Notes: generated by a model not told the origin, from the sequence alone. Counted from the stretch's first letter, positions 6,430 to 57,455 are shown. The stretch: DNA of 64,000 bases from Mobula hypostoma (GCF_963921235.1 NC_086101.1:190526001-190590000), one strand, 5' to 3'. Translations and numbers: made by a program.

Positions 6430-6655
6430 GTGAAAGTGAGCAACACACACAAAATGCTGGAGGAACTCAGCAGACCAGGCAGCATCTGTGGAAAAAAGTA
6501 CAGTTGACGTTACAGGCCGAAACCCTTTGGCCGGACTGGAGTATGGTCTCAGCCCAAAACATGAACTGTACTTTTTTCCACAGATGCTGCCTGGTCCATT
6601 GAGTTCCTTCAGCATTTTGTGTGTTGCTCGGGTTTCCAGCATCTGAAGATTTTCT
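6430..6655. mobile_element. Older PLE pseudo-LTR inverted pair (fold-back)
   Basis: 6478-6505 is the exact reverse complement of 6564-6591 (28 bp); hammerhead core degenerate. Confidence 0.75.
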
Positions 6656-6724
6656 CTTATTCACGAAAGTGATGGAGCATAATCAATGGGCCGAATGGTC
6701 TAAATCTGTTCCTATGCCTTATGT

Positions 6725-10141: not shown

Positions 10142-10264
10142 CTGGCAACACACATAAAAGTTGCTGGTGAACGCAGCAGGCTAGGCAGCATCTATAGGAA
10201 GAGGTACAGTCGACGTTTTGGGCCGAGACCCTTCGTCAGGACTAACTGAAAGAAGAGAAGAAAG
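10142..10264 (-). mobile_element. Short PLE 3'-terminal insertion with mutated hammerhead (GAAA>AAAA)
   Basis: 12-bp TSD tcttaaatgact (10130-10141 / 10265-10276). Confidence 0.85.
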
Positions 10265-12524
10265 TCTTAAATGACTACTGCAGCTGCTTCAACCATTTCC
10301 TCTGGCAGCTCGTTCTATATATACCACCCTCTGGCTGAAAACGTGACCCCTCATCTTTCCCCTCTCACCCTAAACCGATGCCTCACAGTTACAGTCCAGC
10401 CAGTGAAGCACTTGACAAAGTATGTTGTAATTGTGGGATACCGGAATCACTCAGTGCCCTAACGCACCCACACATTCATTTGCAACTAAGTGTGCATCCA
10501 CACCGAGCAAGAAGCAAGTTTCTCTTTTATGTTAAAGATTTAAAAGATTAGCTTTATTTGACACGTGTACATTGAACCATATAGTGAAATGCGTTGTTTG
10601 CATTGACGACCAACAAACCACGAGGATGTTCCACGGGGAGACCGCAAGAGTTGCCAGGCTTTCGGCATCAACTTAGTGTTTCCATAACTTACTCGCCCTA
10701 AAGTTTAAGAGACTACTAGACAGATACATGGAGGAATTTAAAGTGGGGGGGGGGTATATGGGAGGCAGGGTTTAAGGGTCGGCGCAACGTTTCGGGCCGA
10801 AGGGCCTGTAACGTGCTGTACTATTCTATGTTCTATGTTCTAACCCTGTGGAGTCTGTGGAGTATGGGAGAAATCCAGAGCACCGGAAGAAGATCCATGC
10901 TGTCTCGGGGAGAATGTACAAACGTTCACGTTATTGAGAGTTTCTGGTCGCTCCTTTTCTCGTTGCTGTTTTGTGCGATTTTGATCCGGACGGACTACCG
11001 CTGTCGCCAGCAAATAGCGGCGCAAGATTGACGTGAACTGAATACGCCTGGACTCTCAGGATGTCTTTGTGATTTCCTGTTTTGCGTTCTGCGTGTCTCA
11101 CTCTTCTTTGCCGTTTGCGCGATTTGTTCTTTTTTTTTGCTCATGGGGGTTTGATGTTTTCCTCTAAATGGGCTCCTGGGTTTCTTTGTTTCGTGGCTGT
11201 CTGCGGGGAAGAGGAATCTCAGAGTTGAGTACTGAATATATACTCCTATAATAAATGTACTGTGAAGCTTGAACTCCTTGCGGACGGCAACGGGAATTGA
11301 ACCCCGATCAGTGATCACTGGCGCTGTAAAGTGCTTGCGCTAACCACAATACTCCTTCAACACAACTCTGGGTATTTGCTGGACCGTGTCAAGAATCGAA
11401 CCCGTGTCCCTGGCGCTACAAAGTGCACCCTCAGTGCTATACAGTACTAGCGTGCCATTAATCATCCGCAGAGTGGCAAATGTTGGTTGGTTACGGTACA
11501 GTCTGATCATACAGTTCGTCTGCCTCTAGTTCTCCGCTTGTCCTCAGGACATTGACTCAACGTTGTGCTGCACCTGAGTCACATGTCTGCCCAGGGCAGA
11601 TCAGGCGGCCACCTTCCCGAAGGACACTTAAATCACCGAGGTTTTACAGCAATGCCACAGATTCACATGGTTGTTTTTTTTAATATCAGATTTCAGCGGA
11701 CGGACGGGTTACTGCACCATTTAGTTTTAATAGCGGCAGTAAAATGCACACGTGGTTAGTTTAAGATTAGCCGAGAGCACTTCCACAGCGACACGGTCTG
11801 ATTTAAAGGGTTAGGTTCTCAGGGGACTGCAGGAAAAGCTGAGACACACTCGTTTTGGAAACAAAGACCTGTGCTCAAAATAATTTACCAATTCCTGATG
11901 AAGGGTCTCGGCCCGATAAGTCGACTGTTATTCATTTCCATGATCTGCTGAGTTCCTCCAGCATTTTGTGTGCCTTGCTCTGAATTTCCAGCATCTGCAA
12001 AATCTCTTGTGTATGTACTCAAATGGTGCCTTTCAGGAATTTCCCTTGCATACCCCAGCCGGCGAAATAATTTACAAAGTGTACTCATTGTAAATACTGG
12101 AATTGTTCTGCGCATCTGACCATAATCCCAACCTCAATAAATAACCTTTATTCAAATAACCTATCACCCCTTCTCTTCTCCTCACCTGTCCATCACCTCC
12201 CACGGTCCGCTGTCCTCTCCTATCAGATTCCTTCTGCTTCAACCCTTTACCTCTTCCACCGATTCCACACCCCCCCCCCCGCTTCTTACTTCATACTCCC
12301 TTCCCCACCTGTTATATTTTCTAACTGCAGAACCGAATTGAAAGAAAATCACAGGAGCCAGGATTATTCGTTTACTTAGTTTCTTTACTTTAGTGAGGCA
12401 CACAGGAATGACACGGTGGTACAATCAGGTATGCTATTTACATACGTCTTACTTATAACTCGTAATGACTTATGTAGCAAAGAATACTTAATCAAACAAT
12501 ATATTTGCAATAGGACCAATCAAG

Positions 12525-14100
12525 TGTGACAGATGACACAAAGATTGGAGGCGTTGTGGATAGTGTGCAGGGCTGTCAGAGGTTACAGCGGGACATCGAT
12601 AGGATGCAAAACTGGGCTGAGAAGCGGCAGATGGAGTTCAACCCAGGTAAGTGTGAGGTGTAAATATGAGGAATTCTGCAGGTGCTGGAAATTCAAGCAA
12701 CACACATCAAAGTTGCTGGTGAACGCAGCAGGCCAGGCAGCATCTCTAGGAAGAGGTACAGTCGACGTTTCGGGCCAAGAACCTTTGTCAGGACTATCTG
12801 AAGGAAGAGCTAGTGAGAGATTTGAAAGTGGGGGAGGAGGGAGATCTGAAATGATAGGAGAAGACAGGAGGGGGAGGGATGGAGCTGGACGGGTGATTGG
12901 CAAAAGGGATATGAGAGGATCATGGGACAGGAGGCCCAGGGAGAAGAAAAAGGGGGAGGGAGGGAAAAACCCAGAGGATGGGCAAGGGGTGTAGTCAGAG
13001 GGACAGAGGGAGAAAAAGGAGAGAGAGAGAAAGAATGTGTGTATATAAATAAACAATGGATGGGGTACGAGGGGGAGGTGGGGCATTAGCGGAAGTTAGA
13101 GAAGTCAATGTTCATGCCATCAGGTTGGAGGCTACCCAGAGGGAATATAAGGTGTTGTTCCTCCAACCTGAGTGTGGCTTCATCTTTACAGTAGAGGAGG
13201 CCATGGATAGATATATCAGAATGGGAATGGGATGTGGAATTAAAATGCGTGGCCACTGGGAGATCCTGCTTTCTCTGGCGGACAGAGCGTAGGTGTTCAG
13301 CAGAGCGGTCTCCCAGTCTGCGTCGGGTCTCACCAATATATAGAAGGCCACATCGGGAGCACCAGACGCAGTATATAAGTTTGAGGTGGTTCATTTTGGT
13401 AGGTCAAATATGATGGCAGAATATAGTATTAAAGGTAAGACTCTTGGCAGAGTGGAGGATCAGAGGGGTCTTGGGGTCTGAGTCCATAGGACACTCAAAG
13501 ATGCTGTGCAGGTTGACTGTGTGGCTAAGAAGGCATGCAGTGTATTGGCCCTCATCAACCATGGGACTGAGTTTAAGAGCCAAGAGGTAATTTTACAGCT
13601 TTATAGGATCCTGGTCAGACCCCACATGGAGTACTGTGTTCAATTCTGGTCACCTCACCACTGGAAGGATGTGGTAACTACAGAAAGGGTACAGAAGAGA
13701 TTTACAAGGATTTTGCCTGGATTGGAGAGCATGCCCTATGATAATAGGTTGAGTGAACTTGGCCTTTTCTCCTTGGAGTGATGGAGGATGAGAGGTGACC
13801 TGATAGAGGTGTATAAGATGATGAGAGGCATTGATCATGTGGATAGTGAGAGGCTTTTTCCCAGGACTGAAATGGCTAACACAAGAGGGCACAGTTGTTT
13901 GGAAGTAGGTACAGAGGATATGTCAGGGGTAAGTCTTTTATGCAGAGTGTGGTGAGTGTGTGGAATGGGCTGTGGTGACGGTGGTGGAGGCAGATACAAC
14001 TGGGTCTTTTAAGAGACTCCTGGATAGGCACATGGAGCTTAGAAAAATAGAGGGCTATGGATAACCTTAGGTAATTTCTAAAGTAAGGACATGTTCTAAA
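12525..14100 (+). mobile_element. 5'-truncated CR1 LINE interrupted by a PLE
   Basis: CR1 RT (DCVAKKACSVLALIN...HMEYCVQFWSP) resumes exactly after the PLE insertion. Confidence 0.85.
12661..13375 (-). mobile_element. PLE 3' fragment (GIY-YIG plus pseudo-LTR) nested in CR1
   Basis: IYCVWCSRCGLLYIGETRRRLGDRSAEHL...H..H motif; TSD taagtgtgaggtg (12648-12660) / taagtttgaggtg (13376-13388); hammerhead core mutated (CTGACAA). Confidence 0.92.
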
Positions 14101-14104
14101 GTAA

Positions 14105-15500
14105 GGATATGTCTGTGGTGGAAAAGCTGTTGGAAAAGATTCTTGGAGATAGGATCTATGGGCACTTAGAGAATCATGGTCTGATCAGGGACAGTCAGCA
14201 TGGCTTTGTGAAGGGCAGATCGTGTCTAACAAGCCTGATAGAGTTCTTTGAGGAGGTGACCAGGCATATAGATGAGGGTAGTGCAGTGGATGTGATCTAT
14301 ATGGATATTAGTAAGGCATTTGACAAGGTTCCACATGGTAGGCTTATTCAGAAAGTAAGAAGGCATGGGATCCAGTGAAGTTTGGCCAGGTGGATTCAGA
14401 ACTGGCTTGCCTGCAGAAGGCAGAGGGTGGTGGTGGAGGGAGTACATTCAGATTGGAGGATTGTGACTAGTGGTGTCCCACAAGTATCTATTCTGGGACC
14501 TCTACTTTTCGTGATTTTTATTAACGACCTGGATGTGGGGGTAGTAGGGTGGATTGGCAAGTTTGCAGACGACACAAAGGTTGGTGGTGTTGTGGATAGT
14601 GTAGAGGATTGTCAAAGATTGCAGAGAGACATTGATAGGATGCAGAAGTGGGCTGAGAAGTGGCAGATGGAGTTCAACCCAGAGAAGTGTGAGGTGGTAC
14701 ACTTTGGAAGGACAAACTCCGAGGCAGAGTACAAAGTAAATGGCAGGATACTTGGTAGTGTGCAGGAGCAGAGGGATCTCGGGGTACATGTCCACAGATC
14801 CCTGAAAGTTGCCTCACAGGTGGATAGGGTAGTTAAGAAAGCTTATGGGGTGTTAGCTTTCATAAGTCGAGGGATAGAGTTTAAGAGTCGCGATGTAATG
14901 ATGCAGCTCTATAAAACTCTGGTTAGGCCACACTTGGAATACTGTGTCCAGTTCTGGTCACCTCACTATAGGAAGGATGTGGAAGCATTGGAAAGGGTAC
15001 AGAGGAGATTTATCAGGATGCTGCCTCATTTAGAGAGTATGAATTATGATCAGAGATTAAGGGAGCTAGGGCTTTACTCTTTGGAGAGAAGGAGGATGAG
15101 AGGAGACATGATAGAGGTGTACAAGATAATAAGAGGAATAGATAGAGTGGATAGCCAGTGCCTCTTCTCAATACAAGAGGGCATGGCTTTTAGGTAAGGG
15201 GTGGGAGGTTCAAGGGGGATATTAGAGGAAGGTTTTTTACTCAGAGAGTGGTTGGTGCATGGAATGCACTGCCTGAGTCAGTGGTGGAGGCAGATACACT
15301 AGTGAAGTTTAAGAGACTACTAGACAGGTTTATGGAGGAATTTAAGGTGGGGGGTTATATGGGAGGCAGGATCTGAGGGTCGGCACAACATTGTGGGCGG
15401 AAGGGCCTGTACTGTGCTGTACTATTCTACATTCGGTTCAGCTTTGGGGCCGAAGGGCCTGTATTGTGCTGTAGGCTTTCTATGTTTCTATGTTTCTAAT
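14105..15500 (+). mobile_element. CR1 LINE, RT domain to 3' tail
   Basis: QHGFVKGRSCLTSL, KAFDKVPH, GVPQ.SILGP.LF, FADDT, LEYCVQFWSP; (TTCTATGT)n tail at ~15477-15497. Confidence 0.93.
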
Positions 15501-17364
15501 ATTATTCACATATTTATGAAACATTAAATACACTACCCCACTCCTCCCTCACCTGCTTTTACGTACAACTTCCCAGCTTGTAGTTCCCCCACCCCATCTT
15601 CTTATTCTGGCTTCTGCCCCCTTCCTTCCCATCCTGAAGAAGGGTCTCAGCCCAAAACATCGACTGTTTGTCCCCTTCCCTAGATGGTGTCCGACCAGCA
15701 GAGTTCCTCAGGCATTTTATGGGCGTGCTCAACATTTCCAGCATCCTGTGCTTCACTGTCCCATGCAATACACTGAACTCAGATGACCAGGCAGCGTCAG
15801 TGGGGAGGAGGAAAAGAAATTGTCGACATTTCATGTGGAAACCTTGCATCAGAACTCATCAGGTCCTGACGCAGGGTTTGAACCAGATGGTTGATAATTC
15901 CTTTCCCCACCGCGCCCCCCTCCACCACAGCCACTCGACCCGCTGAGTTCCTCAAGCCGATTGTGTGTTGCTTCAGATCGGAAGACCATAAGACAAAGGA
16001 GCAGAATTAGGCTATTTGGCCCATCCCAGCACCTGCAGTCTCCTGTGACTCCGCTGTGCTTGTTAAAGACACAAGATTGGGCATTATTTGTCACACCTAC
16101 ATGGAAAGTTACAGTGAAATGCTTCATTTGTGTCAATGGCCGACACAGTCCGAGGATGTGCTGCGGGCATGTGTCACCACGCTTCCAATGCCAACATGGC
16201 ATTCCTCAACTCTTAACCCTAAACCCATCCGTCTTCGGAATGTGGGAGGAAGCCGGGGCACCTGGAGGAAACTCACGCGGTCACGAGGAGATAATATAAA
16301 CACCTTACAGACAGTGGTAGGAATTGATTCTTTGTCTGGAATTGCTGACGCTGTGAAGCGTTCTGCTCGCCGCTACTCTACCGTGCAACCCCATACTTGT
16401 TCTATTTTCTGTGTTTATCATCAAGGCTCTGAATTCCCATCTGTTCATAGCTAGCCGGAATAATTGGCGCGATTAATGACAGAGGCAGGCCGGACACCCG
16501 AATGCAGTTTCCACACCAGACTCCGATGGTTTCTGTAATGTTATCAGTGTGGTACTAGATGGCGCCGTCTGTCTAACTTCACTCAACACGGGCTGAGCGC
16601 ATTTTAGAAATGCAAACGGGGATCCACCTCGGCGAGACCACAATCTCACCGCAAAATTTCATTCATGTCGGTTGTCGCCTTCATTGACAGACAGAACAAT
16701 TCAGGTCACACCTATCGGAAGGGAAACAGTGACGCGAGAGATTTCTGCAGACACTGGAAACTTTGAGCAACAAACGCAAAATATTGGACGAACTCAGCAG
16801 GCCAGGCAGCATTTATGGAGAGGAACAGAGGAGATGTCGGGGAAAGTTTTTTACACAGAGAGTGGTGAGTGCGCGGGATGGGCTGCCGGCCACATTGGTG
16901 GAGGTGGATATGATAGGGTCTTTTAAGACACTCTTGGACCGGTACATGGAGCTCAGAAAAACAGTGCTGTGGGTAACCCTGGGTAATTTCTAAGTTAAGG
17001 ACATGTTCGGCACAGCTTTGAGGGCCGAAGGGCCTGTATTGTGTTGTAGGTTTCCTGTGTTTCTATGAATAAACAGTCGACGCTGAGACCTTCATCAGCA
17101 CTGGAAAGGAAGGCGGCAGAAGCCGGAATAAGAAGGTGGGAGAGGGGAAGGAGTACAGTCTGGTAGGTGATAGGTCAGACCAGATGAGGCAGAAGAAATA
17201 AGAATCTGGGAGGTGTTGGCTGAAAGAGGTAATCAGGTAAAGGAGCAATCTAATAGCAGAGGACAGTGGACCATGAAAGAAAGTGGGACACCACATTTTT
17301 GTTCTGGCTTCTGCCTCTCTCCTCTTCAGTCCTTATGCAGGGTCTCAGCCCAAGCTATCAGCTG

Positions 17365-17705
17365 TGCCTACCACCACAATAGGTCTACAGTGGACACCAT
17401 GTCAATGGCTCTTTACACAGCCTTATCACCTGGACAATACAACCGCCTATGTCGGGATGCTGTTCATTGACTATAGCCCAGCCGTTAACACCATCATTCC
17501 CACAGTCCTGATTGATAAGCTACAGAACCTTTGTCTCTGCAATTGGATCCTCAACTAGAAGACCACATTCTGTGTGGATTGGTGATAATATCTCCTCCTT
17601 GCTGATGATCAGCACTGGTGCGCCTCAGGGGTGTGTGCTTAGCCCACTGATCTACTCTCTCTAAACTTTGTGGCCATCTACAGCTCAAAAGCCATCTATA
17701 AATTT
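17365..17705 (+). mobile_element. Rex1/Babar RT fragment
   Basis: [37 protein letters not shown]. Confidence 0.75.
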
Positions 17706-17715
17706 GCTGATGATA

Positions 17716-19770
17716 CAAAACACACTAATAATGGTAGAACAGTGGATGCAGTGTACATGGATGTCAGTAAGGCATTTGATAAGGTTCCCCTTGCAAAGCT
17801 CATTCAGAAAGTAAGGAGGCATGGGATCCAAGGGGACATTGCTTTGTGGATCCAGAATTGGCTTGCCCACAGAAGGCAAAGGGTGGTTGTAAATGGTTCG
17901 TATTCTGCAGGGAGGACAGTGGCCAGTTATGTTCCACAGGGATCTGTTCTGGGACCCCTCCTCTTTGTGACTTTTATAATTGACCTTGATAAGGAAGTAG
18001 AAGGGTGGGTTAGTAAGTTTGCTGGTGACACAAAGGTTGGGGGTGCTGTGGATAGTCTGGAGGATTGTCAGAGGTTACAGCAGGACATCGATAGGATGCA
18101 GAACTGGGCTGAGAAGTGGCAGTTGGAGTTCAACCCAGGTAAGTGTGAAGTGGTTCATTTTGGTAGGTCAAATTTGAAGACAGCTGATAGCTGTCAAAAA
18201 AAAAAATCAGAAGTCACTTCTACCAGATGGTGTACACCCCAGAGGTCTGAAGGAGGTGGCCAAAGCGATTGTGGAGACATTAATAATGATCTTTCAAGAA
18301 TGACTAGATTCAAGAATGGTTCTGGAGGACTGGAAAATTTCAAATGTCACTCCACCCTTCAAGAAGGGAGGGAGCCAGAAGAAGGAAAACTATAGGCCCG
18401 TTTGTCTGACCTCAGCAGTTGAGAAGATGTTGGAGTCGATTATTAAGGATGAGGTCTCAGGGTACTTTGAGGCGCATGATAAAATAGGTTGTAGTCTTCA
18501 TGGCTTCCTCAAGGAAAATCTTGCCTGACAAATCTGTCGGGATTCTTTGAAGAAGTGACAAGCAGGATAGACAAAGGAGAATAGATTGATGTTGGTTACT
18601 TGGATCTTCAGAAGGTCTTTGACAAGGTGCCACACATGAGGCTTCTTAACAAGCTACAGTCCCATGGTATTACAGGGAAGATTCTGGCATGGATAAAGCA
18701 GTGGCTAATTGGCAGGAGGCAAAGAGTGGGAATAAAGGGAGTTCTTTCTGGCTGCCAGTGACTAGTGGAGTTCCACAGGGGTCTGTTTTGGGACTGATTC
18801 TTTTTACGTTATATGTCAATGATATGGATAATGGAACTGATGGCTTTGTTGCAAAGTTTGCAGAGGATATGAAGATAGGTGGAGGGGCAGGAAGTTATGA
18901 GGAAGTAGAAGCTACAGAAAGACTTAGACAAATAAGGAGAATGGGTAAAGAAATGACAGATGGAATATAGTGTCAGGAAGTGTATGGTCATGCATTTTGG
19001 TAGAAGAATCGGAGGGGTTGACTATTTACTAAGTGGAAAGAAAATACAAAAACTGAGGTGCAAGGGGACTTGAAAGTCCTTGTGCACGATTCCCTGAAGA
19101 TTAATCTACCAGTTGAGTCAGTGGTGAGATAGGTAAATGCAATGTTAGTATTCATTTCAAGTGGACTAGAATATCAAACCAAGGATGCCATGTTGAAACT
19201 TCATAAGACACTGGTGAGGCCTCACTTGGAGTATTGTGAGCAGGTTTGGGCCCCTTATCTTAGAAAGGATGTGCTGAAACTGGAGAGGTTTCAAAGGAGG
19301 TTCGTGAAAATGATTCCAGGATTGAGTGGTTTGTCATATGAAGAGTGTCTGATGGCTCTGGGCCTGTGTTCACTAGAATTCAGAAGAATGAGGGGTGACC
19401 TCATTGAAACCTATTGAATGGTGAAAGGCCTTGATAGAGTAGATGTGGAGAGGATGTTTCCTATGTTGGGAGAGTCTAAGACCAGAGGACACAGCCTAAA
19501 AATAGATTGGCAAATAGATAAGGAGGAATATCTTTGCTCAGAAGTTGATGAATCTGTGGAATTCTTTGCTACAGGCAGCTGTGGAGGCCAAGTCTTTATG
19601 TATATTTAAGGCAGAGGTTGATAGATTCTTGATTGGTCAGGGCATGAAGGGATACGGGGAGAAGGCAGGAGATTGGGGCTGAGAGGAAAATTGGATCAGC
19701 CATGATGAAATGGTGGAGCAGACTCGATGGGCCAAATGGCCTAATTCTGCTCCTATATAACTTATGGTCT
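17716..19770 (+). mobile_element. Two abutting CR1 fragments of different subfamilies (junction at ~18180-18210)
   Basis: VDAVYMD.SKAFDKVP...FAGDTK (first fragment); DWKISNVTP.FKKG, NYRPVCLTS, LEYCEQVWAP (second). Confidence 0.85.
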
Positions 19771-20315: not shown

Positions 20316-21913
20316 TTCTCTCCTTTTAGTAATCATTCATCAGTTTTGTATGCTTTGGTTATGCCATGCATGACCATGCTTTGGAGGTGCAATAACCGAG
20401 TTGAATGATTTATGTGCATTTTCCAAATTTGTGGACAAAATCAACTTATGAACATTCATAAAAACAGAATTGGTTCATTACCCTGGGGCAGCTCATCTTT
20501 ACCCTGATGTAACAAGAGAGAATGAAGATTGTAATGTGAGCATTTCACTGTGTGTTTCAATGTTTGTGACAAGTAAGGCTAATCTTCCATCTTCAATAAA
20601 TAATATGTTTATATTACTTACTAATTAACTCCTGGTCTTCCAGCTCCTGCTAGAGAGCACATTCTAAGTTATAAGATAAACTGATTCTGAAGTGTTCAGT
20701 TTCATGAACAGCACTCAAATAATTCATGCCACATGCTGCTTTGACTGACTCAAGGCGTTATAACTGCGGCTTGTGGTTTTCATTAGATGTGGTGAAGCCA
20801 TGTCTGCAGCTTCAGTAACTCTGGGTTGAGAGAAAGGAAATAGGAGGAGGCAGCCATTCGGCCCTTCAAGTCTGTTCCACCTTCCAACATAATCATGGCT
20901 GATCATCCACTTCAAGACCCTGGCCCTGTCCCTCACCACTTCACGTGATCCCCTTTGCATTAAGCAATATGTCTACCACAAATGACTTGATGTCTGCAGT
21001 CTTCTTTGGTTCTTCTGATATTGTTGATGTATAAGGGGATAGTTGCCTACAAATGGCTGCTCAGATTGATAGGTGGTAAAGAAGGCATATTGCATGCTTG
21101 TGGTTATTGGCCAAGGCACTGAGTTTAAGAGACAGGAAGTTACGTTGCAGCTATGTTGAACACTGGTTAGGTCACTCCCTGGAGTTTTGCATACAGTCTG
21201 GTTGCCTCATTACAGGAGGGACTCGGAGCCTTTGGAGATGGTACAGAAGAGGTTCACCAGAACGCTGCCTAGATGAGAGGGCATGAACTACAAGGAAAAG
21301 TTAGACAAACTTAAGTTGTTTTCTCTGGAGCGGCAGAGGTTGAGGGGAGATCAGATAGAAGGTTATAAGATTATAAGAGACACTAGATCGCTGGTATCTT
21401 TATCCCAGAGTAGAAATGTCAAGTACCAGAGGGCATGTATTTGAGGTGGGAGGGCGGTAAGTTTAAAGGAAAAATATTTGTTTTACACAGAGGGCGATGG
21501 GTGCATGGAACATGCTTCTAGGGCTGATGGTGGAGGCAGATACAATAGAGGATCACAGATAGGTAAATGAATAAACAGAAAATGGAGGCAAATGGACCAT
21601 GTGCAGGCAGAAGGGATTTGTTTAATTGAGCATTTTTAGATTAACGAACTCAGCACAACATCATGGCTGAAGGATTGTACCTATTCCTGTGGCGTACTGT
21701 GTTCTTTTTCTGATGACTTTCCCTGTATCCCAAGGTTGCGCCTTCTGATTCCAGATGCTCCAGCCGGAAAATTCTCCCTGTGCAGTCCTGATGGGTTTCC
21801 TTGACATACACTTTCATTCTCTAACACACTCGCACACTACTGTTTGTAAAAGCAACACACATCAAAGTTGCTGGTGAACGCAGCAGGCCAGGCAGCATCT
21901 GTAGGAAGAGGTA

Positions 21914-21949
21914 CAGTCGACGTTTCAGGCCGAGACCCTTCGTCAGGAC
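21914..21949 (-). ncRNA. Minimal hammerhead ribozyme motif, left arm of fold-back element 1
   Basis: Minus strand reads GTC-CTGACGA-AGG gtctcgg CCT-GAAAC-GTC-GACTG. Confidence 0.75.
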
Positions 21950-21957
21950 CCTTCGTC

Positions 21958-21995
21958 TAGTCCTGATGAAGGGTCTCGGCCTGAAACGTCGACTG
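21958..21995 (+). ncRNA. Minimal type I hammerhead ribozyme motif; predicted cleavage after C21990
   Basis: Stem I TAGTC (21958-62) / GACTG (21991-95); CTGATGA (21963-69); stem II AGG/CCT; GAAA (21983-86); C-GTC with an ACGT palindrome for a dimeric stem III. Confidence 0.8.
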
Positions 21996-22139
21996 TACCT
22001 CTTCCTACAGATGCTGCCTGGCCTGCTGCGTTCACCAGCAACTTTGATGTGTGTTGCTTGAATTTCCAGCATCTGCAGAATTCCTGTTTGCGTTTTACTG
22101 TTTGTAAAAGCTCAGTTTCATTATCCCATGTACATTGAA

Positions 22140-22780
22140 GCATTCAAAGTTCAAAGTGCATGTATGTCACCATAAACAACACCCAGATTTGTTTTCTTGT
22201 GGGCATTCACAGTAAATCCAGGAAACAGAATAGAATCAATGAAAGACCACACACAACAGGATGGACAAACAACCCATGTGCAAAAGATAACAATCTGTGC
22301 AAATACAAAAGAGAAACAAAAAAGAAATAATAATAAATAAATAAGCAATTAATATTGAGAACGAGAATCATGAAATGAAGACTTATTGTAAGTGAGTCCA
22401 GGTTGTGGAAACAGTTCAGTTGAGTGAAGCTTCCCCTCTGGTTCGGGAACCTGATGGTTGAGGGGTAATAACTGTTCCTGAATCTGATGGTGTGGGACCT
22501 TTTTCCTGATGGCAGCAATGAGAAGAGATGGTTGGGGCCCCGGATGTTGATGCTGCTTTCCCGTGACAACGCTCCATGTAGATGTGCTCAATGGTGGGGA
22601 GGACTTTCCTGGTGTAGGACTGCGCCATATCCACTATTTTTTTGTAGGCTTTTCCATTCAAGTGTATTGGCGTTTCCATACCAGGCCATGTGGCAACTAG
22701 TCAATGTACTCTCCACTATACGTCTATAGAAGTTTGTCAAAGTTTTAGAAGTACTGATCCAAGGACTCACTGAAGACAGG
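22140..22780 (-). mobile_element. Rex1/Babar 3' fragment
   Basis: KTLTNFYRRIVESTLT, HLFSLLPSG..IRFRNSYYP and the ttgaactttg tail. Confidence 0.8.
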
Positions 22781-23896
22781 TTCCTGAACTCCAAACTGGA
22801 CTCACGTATCTGGTGTTGGGGGGGTCACCAGCTCTCATGCCTGTTCCCTGCATGGATTTCCAATCTCTGAACCCTCGAAGCTGGGGAACTCAGTGGCTAA
22901 TCATTGACAAAGAGTTTGGCAGCATTAAACCTTAGTCATGAAGCAAGTCTGGCTACATTGGTGCAGCTCACACCCATCTCTGAACTGTTCCCACAATCTA
23001 AGGACTCATTTTCAAGATTCTTCATCTCATGTTCTTGACAATTACTATGTATTTATTTACTTTTTATTTGAAGAGCTTGTTATCTTTTGCACATGGGTTG
23101 TTTGCCCTCTTGCATGTGGTCTTTCATTGATTCTATTGTGTCTCTTGGATTTACTGTGTATGCCCGCAAGAAAGTGAATCTCTGGGTTGTACGTGGTGAC
23201 CTTGTACTTTGGTAATAACTTCACTTTGAACTATGGCCACTTTGGGACACTTTGGAGGCCGAGGGAATGTTTCAATTAAATTGTATAAAATGACAAGAGA
23301 TGTAAAAGGGGTTTAAAAATATAACAACATTCACTGGGGTTGAAGGGCAGAACATGGGGTAGCACACCTCACCATTGCTGAAAATATTTGTACGTGCACT
23401 TGATGCGCTTTAACCCAGGTGGCGTTTTTTTAAAATCCTGCCTTCATCCTTCCCCAGTTCAAGCAGCTTTTCCAGTTTCTCAGGATTCCTCTTTCCATCC
23501 CCAAATTAAATCTATGATCATATACTTTGGTAGAAGGAACAAAGGCATCGACTATTTTCTAAATGGAGAGAAAATTCAGAAATCCGAAGTGCAGAGGGAC
23601 TTGGGAGTCCTTGTGCAGGATTCCCTGACAAGTTGAGTCACTATTGAGGAAGGCAAAGGTAACGCGAGCATTCATTTCAAGAGGACTAGAATATAAAAAA
23701 GAAGAAAGCAATTCACAGGCTTTATCAGGCATTGGTCAGGCTGCATTTGGAGTATTGTGGGCAGTCTTGGGCCCCTTATCTACGAAAATGTTTGCTAGCA
23801 TTGAAGGGGGTCCAGATGAGCTTTACAAGAATGTGGGTTTCCTCCGGACACTCCAGCTTCCTCCCACAGTCCAAACACATATGGGTTAGTAGGTTA

Positions 23897-24132
23897 CACA
23901 CATCAAAGTTGCTGGTGAATGCAGCAGGCCAGGCAGCATCTCTAGGAAGAGGTACAGTCGACGTTTCAGGCTGAGACCCTTCGTCAGGACCCTTCGTCTA
24001 GTCCTGATGAAGGGTCTCGGCCTGAAACGTCGACTGTACCTCTTCCTAGAGATGCTGCCTGGCCTGTTGCGTTCACCAGCAACTTTGATGTGTGTTGCTT
24101 GAATTTTCAGCATCTGCAGAATTCCTGTTGTT
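23897..24132. mobile_element. Non-autonomous PLE-derived fold-back element 2, inserted inside an HE1-like SINE
   Basis: Same architecture and same loop (ccttcgtcta) as element 1; 15-bp TSD tgggttagtaggtta (23882-23896 / 24133-24147). Confidence 0.9.
23999..24036 (+). ncRNA. Minimal type I hammerhead ribozyme motif; predicted cleavage after C24031
   Basis: Identical to 21958-21995. An antisense copy on the left arm spans 23955-23990. Confidence 0.8.
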
Positions 24133-24479
24133 TGGGTTAGTAGGTTAAATGGTCATTGCAAAATGCCCCATGATTACGCCTGCGGTAAATTTGGGGTTGC
24201 TGGGTGGTGCGGCTCAGGGTGGGGGGAGGGTGGAGGGCAGCTATGCTGCACTCTATCTCAATTGATAAATTTGCAGACTGTCTCCACAGCATTTTGGAAT
24301 GGAGAATTCTAAAATTTCTGAAATGATGAACTCCTCCTATTCCGAAGCAAGTGATTTCTTCTTAGTCCTGGAGTCAGAAGCGGTACAACCTTAGAAGCAG
24401 GTTTTTGACCTGAAACATGGACATTCCCTTTCCTCCCACAGACATTGCTTGATCTGCTAAGTTCCTCCAGCAGATTTAA

Positions 24480-25130
24480 CTTGCAGGTTGAGTCAGCGGT
24501 GAGGAAGGTGAATGCTCTGTTGGCTTTCATTTCAAAAGGACTAAAATATAAAAGTAAAAATGTAATGCTGAGGCTTTATAAGGCCTCAGACTGCACTTGG
24601 AGTAATTGTGAGCAGATGGGCTCCTTGTCTGAGAAAAGATGTGCTGGTATTGGACAGGGTCCAAACAAGGTTCACGAGAATTATCCCAAGAATGAATGGG
24701 TTACGGTATGAGGATCATTTGATATCCCTGGGCCTGTACTTGCTGGAGTTCAGAATTATGATGGGGATCCCATTGAAACCTATCAAATATTCAAAGGCCT
24801 AGATGGAGCGGATGTGAAGAGGATGTTCCCATAGTGGGGTAGTCCACGACCAGGGGGCACAGCCTCAAAATAGAAGGACATCTCTTTAGAATGAGGAGGA
24901 TTTTTTTTTAGCCAGAGGGTGGTAATTCGTGGAATTCATTGCCACAGATGGCTGTAGAGACCAGTTCATTGGGTATATTTAACCAATTTCCCCCGGTATC
25001 AATAAAGTATGACTATGACTATAATTAAAGTGGAGGCTGATAGGTTCCTAATTAGTTGGGTCATCAAAGGATACAGGGAGAAGGCAGGAGAATGGGGTTG
25101 AGCAAGATAATAGATCAACCATGATCGAAT
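24480..25130 (+). mobile_element. CR1 3' fragment with a small Rex-type tail insertion (~24987-25022)
   Basis: AVRKVNALLAFISKGLKYKSK; inserted cccggtatcaataaagtatgactatgact matches the tail of the 46680-47720 element. Confidence 0.8.
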
Positions 25131-26279
25131 GGAGGGTTCACAAGGCTTCGTCCAAACAGATCTTCAAGACTTTTTGTCTTTTGTGTCTTCTGGACTCCTG
25201 CAACTGAGAAGATGTTTTGGATAGTGAGGACATGTGAAGACATCTTCTTCAAGGGATAAGGAGAGTGGATTTCACAGGGGACTGACTCTGCTCGTTGCCT
25301 TCAGTACAGAAGGATATGCACCTCACTGAAGAAGCAAGGCTCCGAGAACAGGGAAATGGAAGCTGTTAAGGCCCAGTCCAAAGAAAATTACTGAATCACA
25401 AGTTAATCCTGGACACTTACAGAGTCCTAATTAAAAGTAGTAACCAAGCAAAACTACAAGAGAGAGTTGCAAAATGGAATGTGACACCGAGATAGAGGAA
25501 GGACAGGTGATGAAAAGCTTGATCAAACCCCCGGGATGAGGAGGCGATGTCAGGTGTGGGTGAGTATTTGTCACATCAGGACTCTGTCGTCTTGATGGCT
25601 GTGAGAGAGAGATTAGACCACGAGACATAGGAACAGAATTTGGTGAATCGGTCCATTGAATTTGCTCCGCCATTCGATCATGGCTGGTTTATTGTCCCTC
25701 TCAGCTCCATTCTCCTGCCTTCTCATAATCTTTGAACATTTACTAATGAAGAACTTAACAACCTGTGCTTTAAATACACCCAATGATTTGGCCTCCACAG
25801 CCGCCTATGGCAATGAATTCCACAGTTTCCCCACCCTCTACCTAGAGAAACTCCTCATCTCTGTGCTAAAGTGTATTCTGAAACTTCGTCCTCTGGTCCT
25901 AGACTCCCCCACTATAGGAAACATCCTCGCTACATCCACTCTATCTAGTCCTTCCAAAATTCGATAGGTTTGAATGAGATCCTCACCCTCCCATTCTACT
26001 AAACTTCAGGGAGTACAGGCTCAGATACCAACCTTACAATTACCCGTTCATTGCCGGGATCATCCCGTGGGAAGAATGTGTAAACTCCTACAGTCAGAGG
26101 CAGGAATTGGGCCCTGGTCATACAGGTTAGTAGGTTAACATCCAGAGTCAACTCCTCTTATTTTGTTATGGACAGTATTTATCTAGTAACAGCACAACTT
26201 CTGGACATAAATTCAAAGTAGGGTTTATTGTCATATCGACACGTAGACGGGCGTACAGGTGCAATGAAAAACGTATCGC

Positions 26280-27414: not shown

Positions 27415-28620
27415 TAGAAGACCTACAGCGCAATATAGGCCCTTCGGCTCAAAGTTGTGCCGAACATGTCCCTACCTTAGAAATTACTAGGTTTACCTAT
27501 AGCCCTTCTATTTGACTAAGCTCCATGTACTATCCAAAAGTCTCTTAAAATACCCTATCGTACCCGCCTCCACTACCGGTGCCGGCAGCCTAATTCCACA
27601 CACTCACCGCTCTCTGCGTAAAGAAACTTACCCCTGACATGTCCTCTGTACCTACTCCCCAACACCTTAAACCTGTGTCCTCTTGTGTTAGCCATTTCAG
27701 CCCTGGAAAAAGCCTCTGACTATCCACATGATCAATGCCTCTCATCATCTTATACACCTCTATCAGGTCACCTCTCATCCTCCGCCATTCCAAGGAGAAA
27801 AGGCTGAGTTCACTCAACCTATTCTCATAAGGCATGCTCTCCAGTCCAGGCAACATCCTTGTAAGTCTCCTCTGCACCCTTTCTGTGGTATGCACATCCT
27901 TCCTGTAGTGAGGCGACCAGAACTGAGCACAGTACTCCAAGTGGGGTCTGACCAGGGTCCTGTATAGCTGCAACTTTTGGCTCCTAAATTTAATTCCACG
28001 ATTGATGAAGGCCAATACACCGTATGTCTTCTTAACCACAGAGACAACCAGCGCAGCTGCTTTGAGCGTTCTATGGACTCGGACCCCAAAATCCCTCTGA
28101 TCCTCCACACTGCCAAAAGTCTTACTATTAATACTATATTCTGCCATCATATTTGACGTACCAAAATGAACCACTTCACATTTATCTGGGTTGAACTCCA
28201 TCTGCCACTTCTCAGCCCAGTTTTGCGTCCTATCAATGTCCCGCTGTAACCTCTGACAGCCCTCCACACTATCCACAACACCTCCAACCATTGTGTCATC
28301 AGCAAATTTACTAACCCATACCTCCACTTTCTCATCCAGGTCATTTATAAAAATCACAAGGAGTAAGCGTCCCAGAACAGTTCCCTGAGGCACACCACTG
28401 GTCACCAACCTCCATGCAGAATATGAGCTGTCTATAACCACTCTTTGCCTTCTGTGGGGAAGCCAATTCTGGATCCACAAAGTAATGTCCCCTTGGATCC
28501 CATGCCTCCTTACTTTCTCAGTAAGCCTTGCATGGATTCCCTTATCAAATGCCTTGCTGAAATCCACATACACTCCATCTACTGCTCTACCTTCATCAAT
28601 GTGTTCAGTCACATCCGATC
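27415..28620 (-). mobile_element. CR1 LINE, RT to 3' end
   Basis: ORF 27590-28795: VDGVYVDFSKAFDK, GVPQGTVLG, FADDT, LEYCAQFWSP. Confidence 0.93.
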
Positions 28621-29458
28621 TGCTGGGATTTGCTCCCCTATCAGAACTCCTGCACTCTTCACTCAAGAACCCACACCCATGGATCTTTCTCAGACTCAGC
28701 ACTCGCTCAAACCCCTCTGGGCACCTTGTTCCTCTAAAGTGACCTTTCTGTCCTTGTGTAACACCATCAACAACAAACACCTGCATTGCACACACGGTAG
28801 TGTAGCGGTTAGCACAACCCTTTACAGTGCCAGCGACCCGGGTTCACTTCCCACCACTGTCTGTTCATTCTCCCCATGACCGCATGGGTTTCCTCAAGGG
28901 GCTCTGATTTCCTCCTGCATTCCAAAGTCATACAGGTTAGTAGGTTAATTGTTCACATGGGTGCAACTGGGCTCGGAAGGGTCTGTTACCATGTCGTATC
29001 TCTAAATTTAAAATATAATATTAAAAAATGTGGCATTTGTAACACAGCAAAACATCCCCAGGGTCCTGACAGGATCTACAGCTGAATCACATTCAACATC
29101 GGACATGAGCGGATTTTAGGATAGATAGGGCAAAGGGTGGAAGTATCTTTGCAGAGAGAGAGAGTGGGAGAGGTTTAAAGAGGGAATTCCGGAACTCGGG
29201 AGTGGATAGCCAGCAGTGATGGAGGGTTAAATTTGGAACATTTCAAGGAGCAGAATTAGAGGGTGGGGAGATCTAGGAGTCCATTGGGGTTGTCTGAGGC
29301 TCCTGCTCCAGCCACACTTCAGCAGCAGAACAACCGGGCCCGGTTTGGGTGCCGGAAAGAGGACTCATCCTCAGCTGACAAACAGAAAAACACAAGCGAT
29401 ACACACCCGGTACTGAAAACCTCCACAGAAATGCTCTTCACCTCTGTGTCTTTGACAG

Positions 29459-30950: not shown

Positions 30951-31199
30951 TCAAAGTGCTATATAAAGACACACGAGATTCTGCAGATACTGGAAATCCA
31001 GAGTAGCACACACAAATGCTGGAGAAACTCAGCAGGTCAGGAGTCCTGACAAAGGGTCTCAGGCCAAAGTGTTGCCTGTTTATTCCTCTCCATAGATGCT
31101 TCCTGACCTGCTAAAAAATTTAAGGGCACTAAGTTACACCTTCTTACTTTTATGTTGCTTCTTGTCCTCTTCTTGGCCACCACAGCACAATCTCAACGT

Positions 31200-35644: not shown

Positions 35645-38061
35645 ACCTGGAGCAACACACACTGAATGCTGGAGGAACTCAACAGGTCAGGCAGCATCTA
35701 TGGAAATGACGGCTTGAAATGTCAGTTGTTTATTCCCTTCCATTGAGGCTGCCCGACCTGCTGAGTTCCTCCAGCATCTTGAGTGAGTTGTTCTGGAGAT
35801 CCAGCATCTGCAGGATCTCTTCTGTCTCCGACTATCTGCCCTATGTATGCCGCTGAATTCAACTTCCTGCACTTAAGGCAAAAGGGGGTAATTTCAAAGG
35901 AGGTGTGGGGCAGGTTTTTACGGAGGGTGGTGGGTGGTTAGAATGTGCTCTCTGGGGTGGTGATAGAGGCAGATACATCAGGGATGTTCAGATCAGCACA
36001 GGAATGTGAGGAAAATAGAAGCTTATGGATACTGTGAAGGGAGAGGACATGAGTTTAGCTGGCCATTTGATTACCAGTTTAATTGGTTCAGCACTACATT
36101 TTCAACCAAAGGGCCTGTCCCTGTGCTGTACTGTTCCGTGTTCTATCAGTTTGCACCCCCCAGCCTTCAATACTCCAAATCATCACACTCATACTAATAC
36201 TCTCTAACCCAGGCACTATCAAGGTGAACCTCAAGGCTATCAAAGGTTTTGGGAAGAAAGCAGGAGAAGGGGGTTGAGAGGGATAGTAAGTCAGCCATGA
36301 TGGAATGGCAGTGCAGACTTGATGGGCCAAGTGGCCTATTCTCCTCCTAGGTCTTATGGTCTGATGATAAGACCATAAGACACAGGAGTAGAATTAGGCC
36401 ATTAGGCTCATCAAGTCTGCTCTGCCATTCAACCATGGCTGATCTTTTTTCTTCTCAACCCCATTCTCCCCGTAACCTTTGATGCCATGTCCAATCAAGA
36501 ACCTATCAATCGCTGCCTTAAATACACCCAATGACCTGGCCTCCACAGCTGCACGTGGCAACAAACTTCACAAATTCACCACCCTCCGACTAAAGAAATT
36601 TCTCCGCATCTCTGCCCTCAATGGACGCCACCTCAATCCTGAGGCTGTGTCATCTTGTCCTAGACTCTCCCACCGTAGGAAACATCCTTTCCAGATCTAC
36701 TCTGTCTAGGCCTTTCAATATTCGAAAGGTTTCAGTGAGATTCTCCCCTCGTCGCTGTAAACTCCAGTGAGTACAGACCCAGACCCATCAAACATTCCTC
36801 GTATGATCACCCTTTCATTCCTAAAATCATCCTTGTGAACCTCCTCTGGACCCTCTCCAATGCCAGCACATCTCCTCTAAGACCTCTTATGTGTCCTCTC
36901 CAAAGTCTCCACATTCTTCCTGTAATGTAGAGCTGGAGACAGTGCAGTTTAAGAGGTGAGCAGGCTGGATGAAATGCAGTGCAGATGAAGGTCCAAGTGA
37001 GAGACGACCAGGCTGGAAGAATCAAGGATAGAAAATCAGCTTCCAGAAGCAGATGTGCTGAGTGGAGTGTGGCTCAGGAAATAAGCAGCATTCATTACGT
37101 GCCAAGTCACATGATGGGCCGCTCATGCTCTTCTGACCATGATTGCTCTTGGAAAATATTTCTACAGAAATGGTTTACCATTGCCTTCTTCTGGGCAGTG
37201 TCTTTACAAGACGGGTGACCCCCGCTATTATCAATACTCTTCAGAGATTGTCTGCCTGGTATCTGTGGTCACATAACCAGGATGTGATACGTACCAGTTG
37301 CTCATACGACCATCCTCCACCTGCTCCCATGACTTCAAGTGACCTTGATCGGGGACTAAACAAGTGCTACACCTTGCCCAAGGGTGACCTGCAGGCTAGC
37401 AGAGGGAAGGAGTGCCTTACACCTCCTGTGGTATCCACCCTGCCACTCATAGGCAATATTATGAACATGAGAAATAATAGTTATCCTTCTGAAAAAAGTG
37501 CATCCTGGGTAGAGTGGCAGAGCAGTGTAACTCCTTCCCGAGCCAGCTGTAAGATTGGCGTTTGTTTTCTGCTACTGTCTGTAAGGAATTTGTACGTTCT
37601 CGCCGTGACTGTGGATTTCCTCCAGGTGTTCCTACCACTTTCCAAAGATGTACCAGTTAGAGTTAGTGAGTTGTGGGCATGCTATGTTGGTGCCAGAAGC
37701 ATGGCGACACTTGTGGTCTGCTCCAAGCACAGCATCGGACTGTGTTGATCACGGCCACAAATGACACATTCTTCTTTTCAGATGTACATGTGATAAAGCT
37801 AATCTCAAATCTCAAAATGTTATCTAAGTGACTTACTGTAAGCTCCTAAAAAGCAGTTTGACAAGATGGACGTGAGGAAAATATTTTCTTTTGTGAGAGA
37901 TTCTAGTACCAAGAGTTACTGTTTAAAAATAAGGAGGTGCCCACTGGCCGCACGATAGTGTAGTGGTTAACACAACGCTTTACAGTACAGACGACTGGGG
38001 TCAATTCCCGCTACTGCCTGTAAGGAGTTTGTATGCTTTCCCCATGACCACACAGGTTTCA

Positions 38062-41915: not shown

Positions 41916-42629
41916 CACTTCACCTGTGAGTCGGCTGGGGTGATATACTGCGTCCGGTGCTCCCGATGTGGCCTTCTATATATTGGCGAGACCCGACGCA
42001 GACTGGGAGATCGTTTTGCTGAACATCTATGCTCTGTCTGCCAGAGAAAGCAGGATCTCCCAGTGGCCACACATTTTAATTCCACATCCCATTCCCATTC
42101 TGACATGTCTATCCACGGCCTCCTCTACTGTAAAGATGAAGCCACACGCAGGTTGGAGGAACAACACCTTATATTCCGTCTGGGTAGCCTCCAACCTGGT
42201 GGCATGAACAATGACTTCTCTACCTTCCGCTAATGCCCCACCTCCCCCTCGTACCCCATCCATTATTTATTTATATACACACATTCTTTCTCTCACTGTC
42301 CTTTTTCTCCCTCTGTCCCTCTGACTATACCCCTTGCCCATCCTCCGGGCTTCCCCCCTCCCCCTTTTCCTTCTCCCTGGGCCTCCTGTCCCATGATCCT
42401 CTCATATCCCTTTTGCCTATCACCTCTCCAGCTCTTGGCTCCATCCCTCCCCCTCCTGTCTTCTCCTATCATTTTGGATCTCCCCCTCCCCCTCCCACTT
42501 TCAAATCTCTTACTCACTCTTCCTTCAGTTCGTCCTGACGAAAGGTCTTGGCCCGAAACGTCGACTGTACCTCTTCCTAGAGATGCTGCCTGGCCTGCTG
42601 TGTTCACCAGCAACTTTGATGTGTGTTGC
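41916..42629 (+). mobile_element. PLE 3' fragment: GIY-YIG endonuclease (CCHH type) plus pseudo-LTR with hammerhead motif
   Basis: FTCESAGVIYCVRCSRCGLLYIGETRRRLGDRFAEH...HFNSTSH; stop at 42233; CTGACGA (42535-41) ... GAAAC GTC (42555-62); TSD ttgagccgaca (41905-41915) / ttgagctgaca (42630-42640). Confidence 0.93.
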
Positions 42630-43242
42630 TTGAGCTGACAGGTGATGGGCGAGACCAGGTGGGGTGGGGATGAATTGAGAAGCTGGGAGAGAGGATAGGT
42701 GGAAGATGCAAAGGGCTGAGAAGGAATACAATAGGAGAGGATAGTGCAGTATAGAAAACAGGAAAGGATCTGATGGGCAGGGCAGGAGAGAAGAAGAGCA
42801 AGGGTCAGGGGGCAGCATTTCAGGTGTGATGCTCTGGATTCCCAGCATCTGCAGAATTTCTTCTGTTTAAAATTGAGGCTGTGTGGAACTGACAGTGTGT
42901 GTAGATTGGCAAGTAGGTCAGGGTGGGCTAGAGGCAGGATTTGGGAAGTAGTTTTGGATAACCTCAATTTCACAGAGGACAGACCACGGAGTGTGACTGA
43001 AGCTTCATGTTTTGAGACGTCAAGGATGTCACTGATAACTTTAGCAGCAGTTTCACTGATACTGGTTGAATGCTGTTCTGGTGACGGACAATCCTCTACT
43101 CTTCAAGGTAGGTGCTTGGCATTCCTAGGGCATACAGGTCCTTGTTTAACATTTCAAATGTATCACAGTGCAGCAGTCAACAAGGTAATGAGAAATTCAT
43201 TCTCTTTGATCTTGGTTGTAGACGGGTCACATTTTACATGGT

Positions 43243-44235: not shown

Positions 44236-44874
44236 GTGCTGTAGGGTTTCTATGTTTAGTCGACGGCTGCATTGTCTCAATTAGTGTTGAAGAGAATTTA
44301 TCATAGTATTTATTCATATTCTAGAACTACGAGCTGAAGATTTTCAATTGAAATTTGCAGTGTACATTTCAGTCTATTGCCACTCTATTCAACATTAGGT
44401 TTTTTAAGAAAGGTCAATATTATCTCTGTTGGAGGTTAAATGAGTTCTGTCTCTGTCTCTGTCTCTCTCTCTCTCCCAATCATTAGGCTGAATGGATGGC
44501 TTCCAAGAGTTTATCTTTTAAACAGCCTTGGACACCGTGTTTTTCCTCGGCTGGGGATATGACTGGTTAAGGCCTGGTGAACTCTGATCCATTCCTGTGT
44601 GGCTTTGTTTTACTGAGTGCGAGCTGCCTGTTGGAGGCAGGATTGACAGACGACGCTGCACAGGAGTTCAATCGTGACTGCTGTGCTTCATGTCAGAGAC
44701 TCGGCTTTGCTGTAGTTAATGATTTTATATCCTCGGCTGGAAAGACATGGAGTTCACGGTGATGTGCTGAGCCTGCAATCTTCCCCTCTCCCAAGATCCA
44801 TAATTCCAGTGCCACTTCCCTGGAGGGATCGCAAGGACTTTGTGTGGCAGGAGGACAGCTTCACGGGAGAGAAA

Positions 44875-45222
44875 ATGCCCCCAGCAGCACTGATGCGCTT
44901 CTCTATGGCGGACTACGTCATCTTCGCCCTGCTTCTCATCTTCTCCTCAATCATCGGACTCTTCTACGCACTAAGTGGCGGGCGGCAGAGGACCACCCAG
45001 GAGTTTCTGCTGGCCGGGCGCAGCATGACCTTCGTGCCGGTGGCCCTCTCCCTCCTCGCCACCTTCCAGTCAGCCGTGGCCATCCTGGGTGTCCCGGCTG
45101 AGATCTACACCAACGGCACTCAGTACTGGTTCCTCGGATGTTCCTACTTCCTCGGACTCCTCATCCCTGCTCACGTCTTTCTCCCTGTGTTTTACCGGCT
45201 TGGCCTCACCAGCACTTATGAG
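44875..45222 (+). CDS. SLC5A6: SLC5A6 first coding exon (start codon uncertain; in-frame ATG also at 44719)
   Basis: [62 protein letters not shown]|gtaagc. [13 protein letters not shown] and TQYWFLGC are SMVT-specific compared with SLC5A5/8/12. Confidence 0.95.
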
Positions 45223-57066: not shown

Positions 57067-57336
57067 CTGTTAAGGGAGGCAAGTATGGCAGTGAACTAGT
57101 GAGTCGAACATAAACAGTTGTCGAAAATATAAGTTAAAACTGCCTAAGGATGGAAAGCCCTTCTGTGCAGAGACTGGTAATAAAACCAGAACCAGGTAAT
57201 AAAAGGCTGGAGTCATGTGTGGGAGATGTGCAAATGTGTTAAACTTTTAATCTTTAAGCTACAAATCAGGAAAGCACACAGTCTTATCTTTGAGTGATGT
57301 TCCTTTATTGGGTTTCAAAATCCATTTCATTTAGAA

Positions 57337-57455
57337 AACAACACACATCAAAGTTGCTGGTGAACGCAGCAGGCCAGGCAGCATCTCTAGGAAGAGGTAC
57401 AGTCGATGTTTCGGGCCAAGACCCTTCGTCAGGGCTAACTGAAAGAAGAGCTAGT
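57337..57455 (-). mobile_element. Short PLE 3'-terminal insertion (hammerhead with GTC>ATC change)
   Basis: Minus strand reads cctgacgaagggtcttggcccgaaacatcgac. Confidence 0.8.

Follow-up and report, generated by a model that had tools for sequence, protein, structure and literature searches.

Insertions of Penelope-like elements (PLEs) show heavy 5' truncation, they are often directly adjoined by an inverted copy that is itself 5'-truncated, and a tail of 30-40 bp is often present at one end only (Craig et al. 2021, PMC8557442). The same authors still regard the origin of these tandem and inverted structures, and that of the one-sided tail, as undefined (PMC8557442). In vitro, the PLE protein of Poseidon from Anolis has two internal start sites of reverse transcription, which lie next to each other, and the tail is the sequence between them (Frangieh et al. 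2024, PMC11167929). The same protein, a predicted dimer, cleaves and extends both DNA strands (PMC11167929). The minimal hammerhead of PLEs is by design inactive unless two sense copies form a dimer; single minimal hammerheads showed no detectable cleavage in vitro, and dimers showed little (PMC4209133). In Schistosoma mansoni, dual minimal hammerheads are located on opposite strands ~100-700 bp apart (PMC4209133). Retrozymes are tandem direct repeats, from which two ribozymes of the same polarity excise a unit that is then circularised (Cervera and de la Pena 2020, PMC7229834). The present analysis concerns a short fold-back insertion, copy 1, and a second insertion of the same type, copy 2, in a stretch of 64,000 nucleotides of Mobula hypostoma (GCF_963921235.1 NC_086101.1:190526001-190590000), which is referred to as the window. 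The feature was interpreted, with a probability of about 0.62, as a minimal fold-back insertion of the resident PLE that seems to have been re-copied as a unit.

The copy 1 insert (residing at 21854-22095) was 242 bp long and was placed between perfect 16-bp direct repeats, which form the target site duplication (TSD). It was composed of two arms (21850-21949 and 21960-22059) of 100 nt each, which were 99% complementary and separated by 10 nt, and of an extension (22060-22095) equivalent to the 30-40-bp tail that PLEs optionally carry (PMC8557442, PMC11167929). The left arm ended at the tail-less 3' end of simple insertions, and the right end carried the tail. An original prediction, made for this locus from the sequence, had described a non-coding, TSD-flanked derivative of the 3' end of a resident PLE, which was borne out by the repeats and by the identity of the tail. 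Its 16-bp TSD and 10-nt loop also held, and its extent of ~240 bp within 21838-22111 was corrected to the insert given above; the proposed architecture of 99-bp arms and a ~35-nt extension was retained with small coordinate shifts, the arms being 100 nt and the tail ~36 nt. The sole arm mismatch was formed by G 21943 and T 21966, which gave the predicted G-U pair in the plus transcript and a C-A mismatch in the minus transcript. Both strands were predicted to fold into a rod, with free energies of -212.9 and -210.2 kcal/mol and z scores of -28.6 and -27.3, respectively, against ~-73 kcal/mol for shuffled sequences. Copy 1 was a canonical PLE complex insertion at its smallest: an antisense and a sense copy of the same ~100 nt of the PLE 3' region were joined head-to-head, both truncated just upstream of the hammerhead.

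On the hairpins, the Rfam families mir-5681 and mir-3492 scored 51.5 bits against a gathering threshold of 88 and 26 against 44, respectively. These sub-threshold matches, located at 21905-22004 and 23946-24045, were of a generic long-hairpin type, and a microRNA gene was rejected on the basis of the scores.

Copy 2 was located only 2 kb from copy 1, and the flanks and duplications of the two insertions were unrelated. The original prediction of a second TSD-flanked copy with the same junction and arm asymmetry agreed with the insertion at 23897-24132, which had a 15-bp repeat of its own. The copies were 97% identical across 234 nt, with the loop and junction in common. Copy 2 arms were 96% complementary, with three mismatches private to copy 2; copy 1 had no private arm mismatch, and the mismatch common to both copies was located 7 nt from the loop. 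In the alignment, the 8 non-native nucleotides at 21950-21957 were common to both copies, the native sequence upstream of 21958 having been read from loose ends of public contigs. The copies also had in common an asymmetry of the arms, CTGACGA on the left and CTGATGA on the right, which fell at position 7 of the hammerhead core, a variable position. All 4 arms carried GGCCT, with a wobble at the base of helix II, and the 5 simple tails of the window carried GGCCC. One loop-distant difference, 49 nt from the loop and present on both arms, was found between the copies: copy 1 had G 21901 and C 22008, and copy 2 had C and G at the matching places. The alignment thereby confirmed a C>G variant that had been claimed to be mirrored in copy 1 and absent from copy 2. 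Judged from these alignments, arm-to-arm copying would be the simplest reading of the mirrored variant.

These shared details also bear on a by-product explanation, in which each fold-back formed anew at PLE integration and the hairpin itself did not propagate. This explanation was considered unlikely, though well short of negligible. The 8 non-native nucleotides and the arm asymmetry were identical in two insertions with unrelated flanks, and an exact recurrence of both is improbable.

A precise empty site of copy 1 was present in a 318-nt public DNA contig of run X1 (organism label A), at a depth of 2.2. The contig joined 21837 directly to 22096 without extra letters and contained one copy of the 16-bp repeat. 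Because the empty site was precise, copy 1 was a recent insertion, polymorphic or species-specific, and not an assembly artefact. Compared with its sister runs, run X1 also contained one additional sampled word of the filled form, which hints at heterozygosity without proving it.

Perfect palindromes are a known assembly hazard and the two copies are close together. Both facts would suit an artefact of the assembly, local duplication, gene conversion that made two unrelated insertions alike, or a miniature inverted-repeat transposable element (MITE) of a DNA transposon. Each of these was nevertheless highly improbable. The empty site, with its single repeat, came from an independent contig, and junction words were found in the short-contig sets of several runs and species labels. 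Local duplication was rejected on the differing flanks of the copies. A MITE was rejected on the asymmetric ends, one of which carried 36 extra nt unlike the ends of DNA transposons, and on duplications that varied within 13-16 bp (13, 15, and 16 bp).

The copy number of the junction was assessed from unitig depth in X1. The unitigs covering 21932-21965 (an exact match), 21936-21976, 21923-21956, and 21947-21980 had depths of 9.6, 20.2, 47.5, and 260, respectively, and contigs with unique flanks had depths of 2.2 to ~5.5. The loop bin summed to 7,408, ~1% of the arm depth (~573,000), which is an upper bound since overlapping unitigs were counted repeatedly. From the unitig depth, we read the number of junction copies in the X1 genome as tens to a few hundred. 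Junction unitig depths of 47-260, against 2-5.5 for single-copy sequence, speak against fold-backs that arise anew each time. The same holds for a different junction, in which 21900 was joined to the mirror position 22009 via ATCAT; it was likewise multi-copy, with a depth of 174, and was present under three organism labels.

The copy 1 junction was also present in public contigs that carried two or three further species labels. A contig of organism D extended across 21922-21985 with 2 other letters and 1 gap, and of the sampled junction words both were found in organisms A and B and one of two in H. Exact-pattern scans of JGI metagenomes for the junction and for the tail core gave no match. 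The junction was thus not confined to the two loci of the window, its words being multi-copy in X1 and present under other species labels.

The sequence comparisons indicate that this junction was probably inherited and not remade, because it was common to two independent insertions, multi-copy in the genome, and present under other species labels. A hand derivation led to the same reading, since the making of the junction would need slippage and a strand switch. Two deterministic routes, a snap-back at the native CCUUC/GAAGG inverted repeat and a run-off at a fixed RNA 5' end, were rejected because their hand-derived products differed from the observed junction. The junction was therefore treated as the outcome of a one-off event that was subsequently inherited.

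Several observations weighed against re-copying as a unit. Organism labels A and B may be one species or two, so the empty site may be allelic or orthologous. The only exact-match loop unitig, with its depth of 9.6, was about what would be expected from the two window loci alone. Beyond these two loci no junction-bearing locus was seen with its flanks, and the copy number was read from the k-mer depth of short contigs. The mirrored difference at 21901/22008 coincided with a polymorphism among native tails. The copy 1 state at 22008 was the majority in near-identical contigs, with no other letter flagged, and the copy 2 state at this site was that of 3/5 simple tails in the window. The mirrored pattern would thus also be expected if the two fold-backs had formed independently from two source RNAs. 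The DNA contigs of runs X1, X5, and X9 held more than 550 other arm-to-arm joints between 21897 and 22057; given this number, new fold-back formation was frequent. In an RNA run, the loop bin had a value of 5.9 against 30,000-129,000 on the arms, and the junction-to-arm ratio was ~65x lower in this run (5.9 against ~30,000) than in DNA (7,408 against ~573,000). The sampled junction words were absent from six RNA runs.

Formation of each fold-back as a by-product of PLE integration would account for the variety of joints, the mirrored native polymorphism, the low depth of the exact-match unitig, and the near absence of the junction from RNA. By this route, both target strands would prime cDNA, or the cDNA would snap back, and the ends would be joined by template switching; the extension of both strands by a PLE protein in vitro is in line with it (PMC11167929). 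The common junction would then reflect a turn-around strongly preferred at the hammerhead's 5' edge, or the origin of a few copies from one master locus. Two older fold-backs of the window, which had other junctions, also fit this route, and one of them (6440-6659) turned around within a few nucleotides of the same place as copy 1. Furthermore, many contigs of runs X1, X13, and X14 started to match at 21956-21960 and had unrelated sequence upstream. This suggests that the 5' ends of PLE copies fall preferentially at 21956-21960, a few nucleotides upstream of the hammerhead core, at either a template end or a stop of the reverse transcriptase; a discrete template end is what the by-product route would lead one to expect.

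In the preferred interpretation, the fold-back seems to have been re-copied as a unit. An RNA containing the apex and the sense arm would be used in trans by the reverse transcriptase and endonuclease of the PLE, and reverse transcription would start at the single-stranded tail. In each cycle, the same template would serve to restore the distal antisense arm, through a second priming on the other target strand, at the tail-less site, or through a snap-back of the cDNA. Such rebuilding would keep the arms nearly identical, mirror their variants, and preserve the loop-adjacent mismatch, and neither a second priming nor a snap-back would carry a 5' flank along. The second multi-copy junction suggests that several replicating hairpin lineages exist among the more than 550 junction types. 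A further step is more tentative, namely that the fold-back acts as a palindromic, non-autonomous retroelement that regenerates itself, a "hairpin SINE" (short interspersed nuclear element) of Penelope. Transcription of its apex and sense arm alone would suffice, and the arms would evolve in concert because one of them is renewed in each cycle. Distinct junctions would mark separate replicating lineages, some of them common to several species and still active.

The hammerhead motifs were located with a descriptor written after Cervera and de la Pena 2014 (PMC4209133), which consisted of CUGANGA, a 4-bp helix II, GAAA, a palindromic ACGU replacing helix III, the GUC cleavage triplet, and a 4-5-bp helix I. 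The PLE tail core CTGAYGA ... GAAACGTC was the minimal hammerhead of Penelope-like elements. The descriptor matched both arms of both copies, with a helix I of 4-5 bp and a helix II of 4 bp, and also matched 1 simple tail (854-881); the hammerheads were located ~95 nt upstream of the tail-less 3' end. A complete minimal hammerhead on each strand, as the prediction had it, was therefore readable in both copies at the level of the descriptor. A hammerhead was present on each strand because one PLE tail was inverted. Rfam hammerhead models gave no match at the gathering score in the whole window and none at E values up to 10 locally, which was expected because the motif is without helix III.

The hairpin transcript contained one sense copy of the ribozyme and its complement, and pairing began at the apex, directly at the ribozyme core. 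When the core alone was opened by constraint in the fold prediction, the cost was 35 kcal/mol and the hammerhead helices still did not form. The ribozyme is accordingly predicted by the folding model to be locked in the duplex of the hairpin transcript, as an earlier caveat on sequestration by the hairpin had anticipated. The hammerheads were interpreted as passengers, the PLE's own minimal dimer-dependent ribozyme present once per arm.

It had further been proposed that the architecture was retrozyme-like or viroid-like. On such a reading, the both-polarity hammerheads would yield small circular or rod-shaped RNAs as transposition intermediates or regulators. This reading was not supported and was judged very improbable. 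The fit of the minimal descriptor to both arms and the rod-like RNA fold agree with it, and animal retrozymes are thought to be PLE-dependent (PMC7229834; bioRxiv 10.64898/2026.07.22.740005). However, each transcript had a single ribozyme copy, so no unit would be excised and ligated, and the hammerheads formed a single inverted pair and no tandem direct repeat. A motif without helix III requires a second sense copy (PMC4209133), whereas here the motif was paired with its complement from the apex outward. No hammerhead was matched in Rfam, and the junction was nearly absent from RNA contigs. Unlike a viroid-like RNA, the element also resided in genomic DNA, as an insertion that had target site duplications and a matching empty site.

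The repeat family of the right arm and tail occurred ~16 times in the window, and the arms of copies 1 and 2 were 94-95% identical to 5 simple tails. Four simple tails (851-950, 10145-10242, 42532-42633, and 57336-57433) ended at, or at most 4 nt from, ...GTGTGTTGC. Others had an extension of ~30 nt (12669-12794, 11893-12010, 16740-16828, 30971-31041, 45867-45937, and 50215-50284). These two classes of 3' end match the two start sites of reverse transcription reported in vitro for the lizard PLE. A stem-loop predicted at the tail-less 3' end was no better than shuffled sequences (z -0.9 and -2.0). The older fold-back at 35650-35830 turned around downstream of the hammerhead and thus contained no complete ribozyme. 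Exactly one tail was present in 4/4 fold-backs of the window; as ~60% of simple insertions are tailed, the chance of this is ~0.05, and the interpretation does not lean on it. The coordinates of the features are summarized in Table 1.

Table 1. Positions of the fold-back insertions and of their parts, numbered from the first letter of the window.
Feature	Position	Strand	Description
Copy 1 TSD, left	21838-21853		16 bp, identical to 22096-22111; empty-site contig joins 21837 to 22096
Copy 1 left arm, antisense PLE tail	21854-21949	-	Spans the tail-less 3' end up to a point 3 nt beyond the hammerhead core, on its upstream side
Copy 1 minimal hammerhead	21946-21919	-	Descriptor match, left arm
Copy 1 loop and junction	21950-21959	+	21950-21957 non-native; native sense sequence from 21958 on
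Copy 1 right arm, sense PLE tail	21960-22059	+	Contains the minimal hammerhead 21963-21990
Copy 1 minimal hammerhead	21963-21990	+	Descriptor match; predicted cleavage after C 21990
Copy 1 unpaired PLE "tail" extension	22060-22095	+	~36 nt; at right end only
Copy 1 TSD, right	22096-22111		16 bp, identical to 21838-21853
Copy 2 TSD, left	23882-23896		15 bp, identical to 24133-24147
Copy 2 fold-back insert	23897-24132	+	Same loop, junction, and arm asymmetry as copy 1
Copy 2 minimal hammerhead	23987-23960	-	Descriptor match
Copy 2 minimal hammerhead	24004-24031	+	Descriptor match
Copy 2 TSD, right	24133-24147		15 bp
Older fold-back, other PLE subfamily	6440-6659	+	Arms 86% complementary; different junction; tail at right only; 13-bp flanking repeat
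Older shorter fold-back, other PLE subfamily	35650-35830	+	56-nt arms, 82% complementary; 32-nt loop; tail at right; right end approximate

Ten open reading frames (ORFs) of the window were examined with Pfam. Several were reverse-transcriptase fragments; none was established as the autonomous PLE partner, which would encode a reverse transcriptase and a GIY-YIG endonuclease, and none adjoined a tail. The ORFs matching RVT_1 (27590-28795, 59701-60852, 46826-47767, 14382-15197, 17670-18395, and 60869-61417) were probably fragments of long interspersed nuclear elements (LINEs), and one of them also matched ALKBH8_N. The ORF at 44719-45321 weakly matched the beginning of the sodium:solute symporter family and may be a host exon. 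An unrelated inverted-repeat pair was located between copies 1 and 2 (22166-22260 and 23106-23200, also 22263-22309 and 23061-23107). Its members were 82-89% complementary and ~750-850 nt apart, and it may be another transposable element. In addition, 19000-19760 formed diverged direct and inverted repeats, 72-84% identical, with 23580-25140 and 25620-25990, a further interspersed family that flanks the region.

Biochemical data on PLE integration are available for a single lizard element only (PMC11167929). A minimal fold-back is a natural record of the whole integration event within 242 bp, including both ends, the turn-around, and the duplication, and the record of copy 1 is complemented by the matching empty site. 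Each arm end coincided with one of the family's two alternative 3' ends, which fits a model of two start sites and two strands in a distant vertebrate. If re-copying as a unit is true, the fold-back would represent a new style of non-autonomous retroelement and would give the genome a large source of long perfect hairpin RNA; if it is false, the fold-back is an ordinary though abundant by-product. Should the hairpin-SINE reading hold, read-through host transcripts would carry ~100 bp of perfect double-stranded RNA matching the essential 3' region of the PLE, and such RNA could feed RNA interference against the parent element. Either way, fold-backs can mislead the annotation of repeats, the prediction of microRNAs, and ribozyme censuses that count "both-polarity" hammerheads.

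Avsunviroids carry hammerheads in both polarities on a rod-like or branched circular RNA. The fold-back resembled them in its rod-like fold and in the hammerhead motif readable on each strand; it differed in that it was encoded in DNA with TSDs, its two motifs were one inverted sequence, and the ribozyme was predicted to be sequestered. L1 twin priming draws its inverted and its direct segment from different, though adjacent, stretches of the RNA. A 5' inversion during target-primed reverse transcription that uses both target strands is common to both systems, whereas here both arms were the same segment, and an origin of the L1 type was rejected for this reason. The metazoan non-LTR (long terminal repeat) retrozymes are also non-coding, hammerhead-bearing, and thought to be mobilised by PLEs (PMC7229834; Li et al. 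2026 preprint). Their ribozymes are of the canonical type I, their repeats are tandem and direct, and they are expressed as circular RNAs, in contrast to the one inverted minimal pair found here. The dual hammerheads of S. mansoni are likewise inverted pairs of minimal PLE hammerheads from truncated PLEs (PMC4209133). That report gives these pairs one sentence, without an analysis of junction, duplication, or copies such as the present one.

The arm ends of the hairpin were ~36 nt apart, flush with the tail-less and tailed 3' ends and 3' of a predicted stem-loop, an arrangement like that of the Poseidon start sites. The host and the PLE family are different, and the correspondence is positional only, the stem-loop not being significant against shuffled sequences. 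With the PLE complex insertions (PMC8557442, Fig. 2), the fold-back shared an inverted and a direct copy, heavy 5' truncation, a one-sided tail, a terminal repeat that contains a hammerhead, and duplications of variable length. In the searchable literature, no account was found of fold-back PLE derivatives that are themselves re-copied. The empty site, the multi-copy junction, and the presence of this junction under other species labels exceed the known PLE architecture. Unlike in the described complex insertions, the inverted and the direct copy here were both cut to ~100-135 nt so that only a hairpin was left. The same junction recurred at sites that are independent of each other, and this implies copying of the fold-back itself.

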